From NCBI GenBank assembly GCA_965649825.1, contig OZ287694.1:743197-807196 (forward strand): 64,000 bases of DNA. Direction: 5' to 3'. A program made the translations under genes and the position numbers. This document shows, in pieces, positions 4,155-60,751 of this stretch (position 1 is the first letter of the stretch; every line of letters starts with the position of its first letter). The notes beneath the pieces are model-generated. The model was not told the DNA's origin and ran no database searches. It was given only the letters and a program-made list of their open reading frames with translations. The stretch comes from Penicillus capitatus. Lineage: Eukaryota > Plantae > Chlorophyta.

Positions 4155-7100
4155 ATGACTGTCGGCAGAAGCGCCATCGACAACTTTTGCGGCGTCCATC
4201 GCGTCGCTATACCATTCTCCAATGCCCTCGGCGATTTCACTCCATGCGTTGTCGATACCTTCATCACTGGTTGCCTCGCAGCCATCCCTATCTCCAGCAA
4301 GTCGTCCTTGTCGTACAGGAATCTGCCATTCCATTGGACTGGCGTGCTTTCTGGCGTACTGGTATCGCATCCACAGCAGAAAAGCACCACTCTTTACGCT
4401 ACTAGAAACAGCCAGACGTCGCCAATGGTGCGCCCGTCCCCTTCTCCGAGTCCAGAAGGCAGAAGTGTGCATCTCAGGTATGCTTGGTTGACAAGTGTCC
4501 TCTGCGTGGCACTGACTGGCACTGGATTCGCGATGCGCCTCAGCGGCCGTCAGATTCTCATCAGTCCAGAAGGCAACATCGCCCCCTACGAATGCCTTGG
4601 TACATTTCCACGTCGCACGGCTTTGATCGATATCCTCCACAGATGGCACGCTATCTCTTGCCTTCTGGCTCGTTGCCTGTCGAGTTCTGCATCTTCAGCT
4701 GCACCGCTTTGCATCGAAGCAGCACTCGACCGTCCGATTCTCGCTGATGCTGGTGACGGCAGGTCGATGCCTTTCGAGTGTCCCCGATCCTCAAAGGCTG
4801 TATACCTTTGCAGGTTATCTGGCAAAACTGCAGCTCGTTTGCGATTCGCATCTCACAAGCTTCGATATCTTCAGTGGTGGCTATATCTTCTTCATCTTCT
4901 GTCAGATGCTCTTGGCGATCTTCGCCGCCTTCCAGTATCCCAAAGAAGAAGACCTCACGCCTCTGCCCTCTGACGGATACCAGGTCAGGTCACACATCCT
5001 AGCAGTACACTCCCATGTCACACTTTTCTAAATCAGATGCTGGAAGGTGTGCCAGAAACACAAGTATGTAGGAAGGAAGATGTCGTGCCCGAATGGCATG
5101 TCCATGTGTTATCGCGTCTCCTCTTCTCCTGGATCTCGCCTCTGCTGCGACAAGGATACAAACGCCCTCTCGAATTCAAAGATATCTGGCAGCTCCATCA
5201 CCTGGATCGAGCCCGGACACTGCTCGAGCAGTTTCGTCGACAGTGGACGAAAGAAACCCATAGCAAACACCGCAAGAACCGACAACCCTCTCTCCTCAAT
5301 GTCCTCGCCAAGATCAACGGCTCCCTCTTTCTTCGAGTGCGTGCATCATCCGGACATGGCTGAGCACTGAATGCAGATGCTGATGCAGGCATTGCCGCTA
5401 CGGTTATTAGCCGACGCCTCTGAACTGGCTGGACCCGTTTTTCTGAACCTGATGCTAAAATCTGTCGAAAACGAAGATGCCTCCGAGAAGCAATATGCAA
5501 TGGCCGGCGCCATCGCTCTGACACTGGTGATCGGCAGCCTCGCCGAGAATCATCACTTTCAGCTGACGACCAGAGCTGCGTTTCGAATTCGATCCATGTT
5601 GACGGCAGAAGTCCAGCGAAAGATCCTCTTCATCAGTGTGGTGGACAGGGCCAAGTTCTCCACGGGGCAGATCTTTAATCTCGTAGCGACCGACACAGAG
5701 ACCCTGCAAGAAAGTTGCAAGGGCTTACTCAGCATTGTCTCTGTCCTTCTGCGCCTCTCACTGGCCACGTTCTTGCTCTTCCAGCAACTGGGCATGGCAT
5801 CTCTCATCATGTTGGCCGTCTTGGTCTCTGCCATTCCTCTCCAAGCCTACATCATCAGACTCTCCACGATCGCCATTCGTTTTGCGCTGATCGAAACAGA
5901 CAAGCGTGTCAAGCTCGAGCAAGAAATCGTTTCTGGTACTTTCGATTTTTCGCACTCTTCAAAAGAGTGAGAGATCGTCATCAGGAATGGAGACAGTGAA
6001 ATGTCACACATGGGAGGAGCCTTCTTTGCGGCGGATCTTTGCCATGCGCACGGACGAACTCCGCCATCTCTGGAAATTCCTCGTCGCCGGTGACCACACA
6101 TAGGCGGCGCGTTCTGCCTGTTATCTACCAGGATGTCATATGTAGGTGCTTTCAACTCCGTGGTTGCAGGTGTTCTGGGCACGGTGGCAGCTGCGCCGAC
6201 CTTTCTGGTGTACGTTTCAACAGGGCATCAGCTGACACCGACCAAAGCTTTTGTCTCCCTCTCCCTCTTCAACATCCTGCGCGTTCCGCTGGAGCAGCTG
6301 CGCCAACTCATTGCCGATACCATTAAAGTGCCGCCAGTCCTCCAGCGATAAGATTCTTGAACGCTTGCCTGCCACAGGCGTACGTCTCACTGAAACGCCT
6401 CCAGCATTTCTTGTCATCCGATGAACAGCCAGAGATCAAGACACTGCCGGTGGCACCTCAAGGTCATTGCCTGGTCACCCAACTGGCCAATCATCTGTTC
6501 GGTACAGGGGAGACGGCTGTGCGTTTGAAAGGAGATTTTGCATGGCATCCCGATTCAGAGCCGTGTCTACGGAATGTGGACGTACAGATTCCTTCGGGTT
6601 CGGTGACAGCGATCGTTGGACCGACAGCATCTGGCAAGACGTCCTTCCTTTCGAGCATCATTGGATTGACTCAGAGCATCTCTGGCTGGCCTCCCACTAT
6701 CCATGGCCGCCTCGCTTTGGTCCCGCAGTCGCCTTTCATTTTGGACGCCACTGTCCGAGAGAACATTCTTTTCGGACAGGAGTACGATTCCGTGCGTTAT
6801 ACCGCCGCCGTTCAGGCATCTGCTCTTGGCCCAGATCTGCACGTGTTCCCTTGGGGAGATGAGACGCTTCTTGGAGAGAGAGGGATCAACATTTCTGGCG
6901 GACAGAAACAACGCATCGCTTTGGCCAGGGCTGTCTACTCAGATGCCGATGTCTTCTTGCTGGATGACCCCCTCTCGGCATTGGACGCCAATGTCACGCA
7001 CTATGTCTTTCGCGAATGCATTCTCTCCGCACTGAAAGGAAAGACGATATTGCTCGTCACCCATCATCTGCCATGCCTCTCAGCCGTCGACCAGATTCTT

Positions 7101-59811: not shown

Positions 59812-60751
59812 ATGATTCCCCACGTGCTTTCCATTCAGTCGCACGTGGTCCATGGATACGTCGGCAATCGCTGTGCCACGTTTTGCCTTCAACGTCTCGG
59901 TATCAACGTCGATGCCGTCAATACGGTCCAGCTATCGAACCATACGGGATACCCCCATGTCAGCGGAACCACCCGAGTTGGCCCAGATCTTCTGGAGCTC
60001 TATAACGGCCTCGAAATCAATCGACTTAACCGTCACTCTCATGTACTGACGGGGTATATGGGTTCGAAGAGTGTGCTCGAAGGCGTCGGGCGTATCGTAC
60101 GGGAGGCGAAGAAGAAACAACCGGAATGTGTGTTTGTGTGTGATCCGGTGATGGGAGACAACGGCAAAGCGTATCTCCCCCCTGATCTCGTGCAGATCTA
60201 TCGAAAAGACGTGCTGCCGCTTGCCGATGTCCTTCTGCCCAATCAGTTCGAGGCGGAGCTGCTGACGGAGATGTCCATCGACGATGTCGCCTCTGCCGCT
60301 CAGGCCTGTGCCAAGATTCAAGCCATTGGGCCTAAGACAGTGGTAGACACTCGCATTTATCTCACACCTTCCAGAAAAGAGTGAGATATAGATCATCACC
60401 AGTATGCATGATCCCGAAGCGCCGGAGGGATGCATGACCCTCTATGCGAATACGAAGGAGAGCCAGAAGCCTTTGCATCCTTCGACCTTCAAGATCCATA
60501 TTCCCAAAATCGATTATGCGTTCAGAGGGACGGGCGATCTCTTTGGGGCGCTGCTCTTGGGGTTGACTGTTCAACGGCCACATGAGTTGGACTGGGCCTG
60601 CGCTCAGACGACCTCTCGACTCCATGCCCTTCTCACAAAGACGCATCGCCAGTCGAAGGGACAGCGTCCAGTCTTCCTCGAGCTCGATCTCATCGGATCC
60701 CAGGAGTGCCTGGTGACAAACCTCGAATCTTTTCCCGTCATTTCACTGTGA
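59812..60751 (+). CDS. PDXK: Pyridoxal kinase
   Basis: VLSIQSHVVHGYVGN...VNTVQLSNHTGY, VLTGYMGS, VCDPVMGDNG, LPNQFEAELLT, FRGTGDLFGALLL; intron at 60343-60391. Confidence 0.96.

Follow-up and report, generated by a model that had tools for sequence, protein, structure and literature searches.

A short strand-symmetric word recurs in minimal introns of unrelated genes in the green alga Penicillus capitatus

A 64-kb stretch of Penicillus capitatus DNA (contig OZ287694.1 of assembly GCA_965649825.1, positions 743,197 to 807,196 of the forward strand; hereafter the window) was analysed for a short word, the 8-mer TCACTCTT/AAGAGTGA, that recurs in introns of about 50 nt in genes with no relation to one another. 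The word is real and strongly enriched in introns. It appears not to have created the introns that it occupies, where this could be tested, because the tested introns are ancient. The explanation that we slightly favour, tentatively and with rather less than even confidence, is a strand-symmetric short repeat that spreads at the level of DNA within minimal introns that already existed, hairpins being a by-product.

Judging by its genes, the window is nuclear DNA of a Bryopsidales-related green alga; its spliced MDH protein is 79% identical to a EukProt protein, 72% to that of Bryopsis sp. KO-2023, and 70–71% to that of Ostreobium quekettii. About 20 genes were found in the 64 kb. Introns were called with a custom Viterbi gene finder, from whose splice-site weights the invariant GT/AG columns had been removed, and with a protein-to-genome spliced aligner. 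Strands were curated by hand. At the motif sites, they were not assignable from open reading frame (ORF) continuity alone. After curation, the set contained 96 predicted introns (94 non-redundant) with a median length of 50 nt and a 5–95% range of 44–58 nt. The introns of MDH and RPN8 were checked against homologues, and those of an EDM2-like gene are backed by cross-species alignment; the rest are predictions. In these predicted introns, the donor consensus beyond GT is nearly nil (A36/C29/G29 at +3, G at +5 in only 43%). Intron composition follows a gradient, with the 5′ half poor in G and the 3′ half poor in C, which is identical when viewed from either strand. Sequences of relatives added about 45 kb to the total sample.

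The 8-mer is present in 20 copies and is the most over-represented 8-mer of the window; dinucleotide shuffles gave a mean of 3.5 copies (sd 2.1, maximum 10). All 18 positions listed in a preliminary description of this DNA proved exact, and two further copies, at 39797 and 62466, both lie in coding exons. The 8-mer is the core of a 12–16-nt word with the consensus (GA)TCTCAC[T/A]CTTTT(GA), whose flanking extension consists of (GA)TC upstream and GA(G) downstream. The extended form TCTCACTCTT occurs 11 times vs about 0.1 expected. The 12-mer TCTCACTCTTTT has seven exact copies and 33 copies at ≤2 mismatches (2–8 in block shuffles), and its sister variant, TCTCACACTTTT, is also present in the window. 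The pyrimidine arm of the word (TCTCAC side) is referred to below as L and the purine arm (GTGAGA side) as R. The longest stretch shared by any two copies is 15–16 nt. The 16-mer AAAGAGTGAGAGATCG is found twice on the + strand, sense in ABCC (+) and antisense in MDH (−), just as first described, and GTCTCACTCTTTTGA, identical over 15 nt, starts both MDH intron 3 and the putative intron 47446–47496. The copies fall into 10 exact, 8 with one mismatch, and about 5 with two mismatches, which is an excess of perfect copies. A longer parent element was considered and rejected: in two introns, the word is flanked by TTGACAGAA (9 copies) and GGATTTCTG, but elsewhere the surroundings of these two sequences are unrelated. 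We estimate that chance alone would produce about 0.5 shared 10-mers of this type.

Strong copies, defined as an exact 8-mer or a 12-mer of either variant at ≤1 mismatch, number 27 in the window. Predicted introns, which make up 4.87 kb or 7.6% of the window, contain 19 of them (3.9 per kb; binomial P = 7e-16), exons (36.9 kb) contain three (0.08 per kb), and the other DNA (22.2 kb) contains five (0.22 per kb). The density in introns is 17-fold that of other non-coding DNA, which is itself enriched (five copies vs about 0.9 expected); exons, with three copies vs about 1.5 expected, are not. An arm is borne by about 18 of the 94 introns (19%). When each intron half was shuffled separately to preserve composition, TCACTCTT was predicted in 0.12 introns vs 5 observed and AAGAGTGA in 0.05 vs 4; the intron enrichment of the 8-mer is therefore not a composition effect. 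The enrichment over shuffled introns anticipated in the preliminary description thus holds within the window after half-intron shuffling. Its tally of 14 intronic copies was right as to enrichment and needs correction in detail: the RPN8 copy at 42776 is exonic and codes for M-S-L-L, and the intron of the gene named there as ‘TT9’, which is an FPL-domain gene, is only putative. The copies are also clustered. The word is carried by 8 of 15 introns of two adjacent, unrelated minus-strand genes, EDM2-like and MDH, vs 10 of 79 elsewhere (Fisher p = 0.001).

Relative to transcription, ten intronic copies are sense and nine antisense, and the orientation independence claimed earlier is borne out. 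Four introns contain both arms under the strict definition, vs 0.94 expected (p = 0.006), and seven contain both if degenerate partners are counted. The order in these paired introns is always TCTCAC first and GTGAGA second (7/7 convergent), with stems of 8–15 bp and loops of 3–17 nt. The short inverted-repeat arrangement in the preliminary description is frequent and its four named stem-loops are real, but only 4–7 of about 18 motif introns have both arms. Arm offsets within introns range from 2 to 34, pyrimidine arms lying mostly at 2–18 and purine arms at 23–34; this placement of L in the 5′ half and R in the 3′ half agrees with the general G-poor/C-poor gradient of introns.

Folding yielded −13.3 kcal/mol (z −2.9) for intron 5936–5984, −13.1 (z −2.2) for 22831–22881, and −9.4 (z −2.5) for 60343–60391, whereas the stem of 47446–47496 was read off the sequence without fold computation. 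A z below −2 was reached by only three of the eight folded introns with an exact 8-mer. About half of the motif introns have one perfect arm with no partner and no fold, for example, MDH introns 2 and 4, PPR, and Dpy-30. Weak folds of such introns include 26099–26145 with a minimum free energy (MFE) of 0, 23263–23319 with −3.7, and 23658–23706 with −4.7. Lone perfect arms were found in both orientations, the pyrimidine arm only in MDH intron 2 and the purine arm only in the Dpy-30 intron. In three of the seven paired introns, a T-variant arm stands opposite the complement of an A-variant, leaving a central mismatch, and no compensatory changes were seen; owing to this mixing of variants, the arms look independent rather than parts of a co-evolving stem.

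Introns as a class are not hairpin-prone: their mean MFE was −9.18 kcal/mol vs −9.13 for chimeric halves of different introns, and in the full set of predicted introns, the two ends paired no better than mismatched ends. A general hairpin or mirtron-like tendency of introns was rejected on these two controls. Separately, two motif-free introns, 42562–42616 (+; −22.2 kcal/mol, z −3.6) and 8701–8750 (+; −19.7, z −3.3), fold end to end and leave AG as a 3′ overhang; by their predicted folds, they look mirtron-like. A search of Rfam gave no match at gathering thresholds and four weak, chance-level matches at E ≤ 5, none of which overlaps a motif copy. One of these, Ocean-VII at 21617–21646 (E 2.1), lies inside the predicted intron 21619–21662, which was rejected as coding according to alignment with the sister species. 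A resemblance between MDH intron 3 and the 5′ portion of U2 small nuclear RNA was dropped, as Rfam had no match there even at E ≤ 5.

The preliminary description had suggested that the element seeded the introns in the manner of an introner or a miniature inverted-repeat transposable element (MITE), and had proposed absence of their positions from orthologues as a test of recent gain. The antiquity of introns was tested in MDH and, by sharing with a sister species, in the EDM2-like gene. MDH introns were mapped by the spliced aligner in Bryopsis (L001), Ostreobium (L002), [Myrmecia] bisecta (L006), and Marchantia (L005). All seven, including motif introns 2, 3, 4, and 7, have position and phase in common with Bryopsis and Ostreobium (alignment columns 54, 87, 124, 183, 220, 253, and 276), in which these introns are 115–1045 nt long with ordinary GTRRG-like donors. 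Introns 1–4 and 6 are also found in the trebouxiophyte [Myrmecia] bisecta (columns 54, 87, 124, 183, and 253) and intron 5 in Marchantia (column 220). Because a trebouxiophyte has introns at the positions of motif introns 2, 3, and 4, these three predate the split between Ulvophyceae and Trebouxiophyceae; motif intron 7 is no younger than Bryopsidales. The sister species likewise has the EDM2-like motif introns. Motif introns do not differ in length from the others (50.7 nt, n = 15, vs 50.7 nt, n = 79; Mann–Whitney p = 0.98). When about 95 introns were locally aligned all against all, the top pairs reached scores of 30–36, equal to 15–18 matched nt, all within motif arms; similarity between introns stops at 12–18 nt, short of both splice boundaries. 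No target-site duplications or flanking direct repeats were visible around the seven paired copies, which were inspected by eye without a formal search. Neither seeding nor recent gain agrees with these observations. The ancient positions that the preliminary description had set against its own proposal were found, whereas the accompanying lack of similarity outside the 8-mer was not, since similarity extends to 12–18 nt.

Two Mb-scale contigs of relatives were found through an EDM2-like query, L004 (ENA ERZ25074695 ctg340529, 1.84 Mb) and L003 (ENA ERZ26696514 ctg303802, 1.37 Mb). Such ENA ‘metagenome’ assemblies have been gene-called as if prokaryotic, and eukaryotic genes appear in them as ORF fragments. 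L004 is 98.2–98.9% identical to positions 10.9–31.7 kb of the window and represents a near-identical strain. Its nine exact 8-mers match the nine of the window one to one in the shared region, one 12-mer copy differing by one base. L003 belongs to a sister species with about 75–82% DNA identity. All four EDM2-like motif copies are present at its orthologous introns, and each lineage departs differently from the consensus. Over these four copies in one gene, identity is 79% at motif positions (38 of 48) and 73% in the rest of the introns (257 of 352), which is not significantly different; in exons it is 89%. L003 contains seven copies in 20.7 kb vs 0.8 expected, including some in introns of genes outside the window. 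The Bryopsis and Ostreobium loci showed no clear excess of the word. By these comparisons, specificity of the word to the short-intron lineage, here the near-identical strain and the sister species but not the Bryopsis and Ostreobium loci, is supported. The closest database MDH, P0001 (EukProt g5221.t1), has an 18-residue in-frame insertion V...Q exactly at the site of intron 3, as if a 54-nt intron had been left unspliced in the gene model; if so, short introns predate the species of the window. No motif copies were found in L007, a 5.6-kb contig, which is haplotig-like with half the coverage.

If the word is a DNA-level repeat, as we tentatively favour, its family would consist of lineage-specific, short (12–16 bp), strand-symmetric repeats in pre-existing spliceosomal introns of about 50 nt. 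Non-coding transcribed DNA would receive short units, by copying or insertion and in either orientation; copies would survive best where they are spliced out and would then decay. Two convergent copies in one intron would give an 8–15-bp stem-loop in the pre-mRNA as a consequence and not a purpose. We infer this DNA-level mode of spread from the equal use of strands, the lone perfect arms in both orientations, the mixing of variants in pairs, the clustering in neighbouring genes, and the enrichment outside introns, and also because perfect copies are in excess while old copies decay independently, as the four copies predating the sister split do in each lineage. An ordinary cut-and-paste or MITE mechanism does not fit. 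Several points weigh against this reading. The 17-fold preference for introns relative to other non-coding DNA is not expected of a neutral DNA element, and an insert of 12–35 bp should add length, yet intron length is unchanged within its narrow range. No longer element, autonomous partner, or target-site duplication was seen, and no copy present in one and absent from the other was found between the window and the 98–99% identical strain. To our knowledge, no mechanism writes a perfect 12–16-mer into a 50-nt intron without a change of length. The sample is also small and its introns are mostly predicted.

A selected RNA-level element of minimal introns, close to the folding or binding signal that the preliminary description offered as its alternative, is somewhat less probable in our judgement, though a serious contender; here, a stem would mask a decoy or real donor or compact the intron, or the arms would bind a splicing factor. 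It accounts for the intron-specific enrichment, for the excess of arm co-occurrence, for the bias of pyrimidine arms towards the 5′ half of the intron and of purine arms towards its 3′ half, and for the persistence of the word in the sister species; unchanged length and ancient positions are expected of point mutation under selection, and donors as degenerate as these make auxiliary signals plausible. The purine arm AAAAG(A/T)GTGAGAT, moreover, resembles an ideal 5′ splice junction and is a real donor twice (RPN8 42796 and ABCC 8973), although its role as a donor mimic is a lead, not a result. Short-intron splicing enhancers, such as vertebrate G-runs, and yeast structure-assisted splicing are strand-specific and usually position-constrained. 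The present word is like such enhancers in being short and enriched in small introns with weak signals, in which stems can alter distances or mask sites, but it is unlike them in having no strand bias and a variable position. Further evidence against an RNA element comes from the roughly half of motif introns with one perfect arm and no fold, the variable loops, the lack of compensatory changes, and stems that would sequester the real donor (MDH intron 3 and 47446–47496). The word is also confined to about 19% of introns and is not clearly better conserved across species than the intron background, an RNA element does not predict clustering in neighbouring genes, and one perfect copy lies in a 3′ untranslated region (UTR). 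A protein-binding site in double-stranded DNA, intragenic regulatory or coupling transcription to splicing and intronic because the rest of the gene body codes, is unlikely. It would suit the strand symmetry, the lone perfect sites in either orientation, and the clustering at the scale of the intron, the gene, and the group of neighbouring genes, but density in promoters, UTRs, and intergenic DNA is 17-fold lower than in introns, there is no enrichment in exons even at sites where coding would permit the word, and paired sites are only convergent with variable spacing. Possible, but doubtful, is an undescribed process, in which a self-propagating micro-repeat would overwrite part of the interior of minimal introns by short-patch copying or a strand-symmetric DNA or duplex signal would aid a spliceosome with nearly consensus-free donors in recognising introns of about 50 nt.

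The least credence is given to a core splicing signal, in which CTCAC would be a branch point followed by a polypyrimidine tract, or to a by-product of intron composition. CTCAC does agree with the loose branch-point pattern yUnAy and has a T-run after it, and the 5′ and 3′ halves of introns are indeed G-poor and C-poor. However, the TGAC/CTGAC branch-point-like sites lie 11–19 nt from the 3′ splice site, whereas the CTCAC of the motif lies 21–44 nt from it and sometimes at intron position +2; this distance and the antisense half of the copies rule out a branch-point reading, the reverse complement being equally common, and composition-preserving shuffles fall far short of the observed number of introns. 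Hardly more credible is a mobile, introner- or MITE-like element with short inverted repeats that created these introns by insertion into exons. An inverted-repeat sequence common to unrelated genes and the identical 15-mer opening two introns are in its favour, and other algae and protists have inverted-repeat introners (PMC9860276, PMC7789003). Against it stand the positions and phases of all seven MDH introns in Bryopsis and Ostreobium, three motif-bearing ones being shared with a trebouxiophyte as well, the EDM2-like motif introns common to the sister species, the unchanged intron length, and the lack of visible target-site duplications; moreover, similarity over 12–18 nt falls short of the operational definition of introners, which is similarity reaching both splice boundaries (PMC9860276). 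What remains of our confidence is reserved for explanations not yet considered.

Introners, transposons that generate introns, are known from Micromonas, Aureococcus, dinoflagellates, and others (PMC9860276). They share with the present word the occurrence of common intron sequence in unrelated genes, inverted repeats in some cases, either orientation, and specificity to an algal lineage (PMC9860276), but introner similarity reaches both splice boundaries at new positions, whereas here an internal patch of 12–18 nt lies at ancient positions (where tested) in introns of unchanged length with no target-site duplication seen. Secondary repeats and transposable element fragments inside existing introns form a class that is removed by introner pipelines (PMC9860276). 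They resemble the word in that only part of the intron is similar, copies have both orientations, and some copies lie outside introns; unlike it, they lengthen the intron and are at least as common intergenically, while the unit here is 12–16 bp in introns of about 50 nt with a 17-fold intron preference. The inverted-repeat introner elements of Amoebophrya have repeats of 8–20 nt in one intron that form a hairpin and can join the intron ends (PMC7789003). Most of those introns are non-canonical, with direct repeats across their borders and repeats that pair the intron ends (PMC7789003), in contrast to the window, whose GT(GC)-AG introns have internal repeats, a single arm in half of the copies, and one word in common across the genome. 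Double-stranded RNA can likewise form from the internally symmetrical stwintrons and the sister introns of Hypoxylaceae, which lack flanking duplications and have been proposed to spread without transposition (PMC8469720); they differ in having terminal inverted repeats of 45–55 nt, whole-intron similarity, and new sites (PMC8469720), as opposed to arms of 12–16 nt in old introns. We found no literature report tying introners, or this word, to Bryopsidales.

The individual copies are spread over genes identified, with their strands, via Pfam and PDB: ABCC (+), PPR (+), RPN8 (+), the FPL-domain gene (+), mTERF (−), Dpy-30 (−), pyridoxal kinase (+), and a Na+/H+ exchanger (+), and over the minus-strand EDM2-like and MDH genes. 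In ABCC, assigned from Pfam ABC_tran/ABC_membrane, the 53-nt intron 4984–5036 contains a sense L variant TGTCACACTTTT at 5016–5027, 17 nt from the 3′ splice site. The 49-nt intron 5936–5984 contains a perfect R arm AAAAGAGTGAGAGATCG at 5961–5977 with a degenerate L arm CGATTTTTCGCACTCTT upstream, and the stem-loop spans intron positions 8–42. At 8967–9018, the 5′ junction ACAAAA|GTGAGA of intron 8973–9018 is an R-type arm serving as the real donor. ABCC has a paralogue head to head with it, 1–2635 (−) and 4155–9502 (+), and homologous introns of the two (e.g., 1059–1105 and 5936–5984) have the same position and no common sequence, the motif being found only in the + copy.

Four introns of the EDM2-like gene (−) carry the word. 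The 53-nt intron 20054–20106 has a lone sense L arm TCTCACTCTTAT at 20070–20081, and the orthologous site of the sister species reads TCTCACTTTTCT. In the 47-nt intron 20288–20334, a lone sense R arm AAAAGCGTGAGATTAG at 20292–20303 abuts the 3′ splice site, where L004 and the sister both have GTGTGAGATTAG. The 43-nt intron 21453–21495 starts with two tandem L arms, GTCACACTTTT and TCTCACTCTTA; its first ~25 nt are nearly unchanged in the sister (one 1-nt deletion), and its 3′ part has diverged. The 52-nt intron 21683–21734 has an R arm AAAAAGTGTGAGAAT at 21690–21701 and an L-like 5′ end GTCACACA, which is a full L arm GTCTCACACTCTTTTG in the sister. In the neighbouring MDH (−), intron 7 (22831–22881; 51 nt, phase 1) contains L CGATCTCTCACTCTTT and R AAAGAGTGA in a 9-bp stem followed by a CTGAC branch-point-like site. 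Intron 4 (23263–23319; 57 nt) has a lone sense L arm ACTCACTCTTAA, with the 8-mer at 23298–23305 and no fold. In intron 3 (23497–23546; 50 nt), the L arm lies at the donor (GTCTCACTCTTTTGA) and an R variant AAGTGTGAGAT at 23518–23528, and the stem includes the 5′ splice site. Intron 2 (23658–23706; 49 nt), apparently GC-AG, has a lone perfect L arm ATCTCACTCTTTTGG at 23678–23689.

The 47-nt PPR intron 26099–26145 (+) contains a lone sense L arm TCTCACTCTTGT at 26114–26125. In RPN8 (42776–42851, +), whose intron structure was taken from alignment to PDB 8amz_U, the 8-mer at 42776–42783 is followed by a complementary arm AAAA|GTGTGAGAT at 42792–42803, which is the 5′ junction of intron 42796–42851 (alternative donor 42805). 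The 51-nt intron 47446–47496 (+) of the FPL-domain gene, with its L arm at the donor and an R arm AAGAGTGACC, is in frame and stop-free and therefore only putative. A putative 58-nt intron of the mTERF gene (51082–51139, −) has the L variant TCTCACACTTTT at 51122–51133 and GATGTGTGAC near its 3′ end. The 51-nt Dpy-30 intron 52586–52636 (−) has a lone sense R arm AAAAAGAGTGAGAGTGTGA at 52600–52611 and no partner arm. The 49-nt intron 60343–60391 (+) of the pyridoxal-kinase gene pairs an L variant ATCTCACACCTT at 60359–60370 with an R arm AAAAGAGTGAGAT at 60375–60386 in a stem that stops 3 nt before AG, and the 47-nt intron 63369–63415 (+) of the Na+/H+ exchanger gene has a lone R variant AAATGTGTGAGAT at 63391–63402. 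Outside introns, a perfect 12-mer at 58744–58755 (+), with the mini-palindrome ATCTCACTCTTTTTGAGAT, lies about 20 nt past the stop of a small ORF, in its 3′ UTR or in intergenic DNA; this three-exon ORF, 58350–58725 (+), reads MSSSFEGNLKKETKPHRCNDRVEDVIE...DTWQ*, its stop codon being just upstream of the motif. Two tandem L-type copies, TCTCACACTGTT and TGTCACTCTTTT, are located at 49584–49606 (−) in unassigned DNA between two convergent genes.

Other features of the window were recorded in passing. Another word in excess is GATGTGAC/GTCACATC, with 20 copies, and GTCACATCA is present 12 times, vs about 0.5 expected; the TCAC/GTGA theme is common to this second word and the main motif. Many of its copies are intergenic, often as ACGTCACATCA (e.g., 24400, 45645, 49381, 58602, 59138, 60749, and 60831), and others are intronic (e.g., 23111, 23665, 42606, and 45996); it may be a promoter or terminator word. 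ATCGAT/GATCGAT is in excess in introns, ATCGAT occurring in 8 introns vs 0.8 expected, and CATCGA/TCGATG is the most enriched hexamer class of the whole window. The gene finder called almost nothing in a region of lower GC content (about 46%) at about 29500–34500. A tandem gene duplicate, 14427–16296 (−) and 18156–18751 (−), has near-identical introns, and its longer copy contains a perfect (GTCC)x10.8 microsatellite at 16096–16138, read as TDGR repeats at the predicted N-terminus. Beside its EDM2-like gene, the sister species keeps only an MDH 3′-end remnant of about 90 nt (L003:8890–8990 vs window 22617–22720), followed by a BTB/Kelch gene, which from the alignment appears to be a rearrangement breakpoint inside MDH.

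The two public Mb-scale ENA contigs, of the near-identical strain and the sister species, make a genome-wide test possible. If the word proves to be a functional RNA or duplex signal, it would provide a handle on how the spliceosome finds introns of about 50 nt with donors that are little more than GT. Short-patch copying, which would leave position and length untouched, would homogenise introns against one another with no gain of introns. Should the word spread at the level of DNA with introns becoming neither new nor longer, this would be a turnover of intron sequence distinct from introners and a caution against taking shared intron sequence as proof of intron gain.

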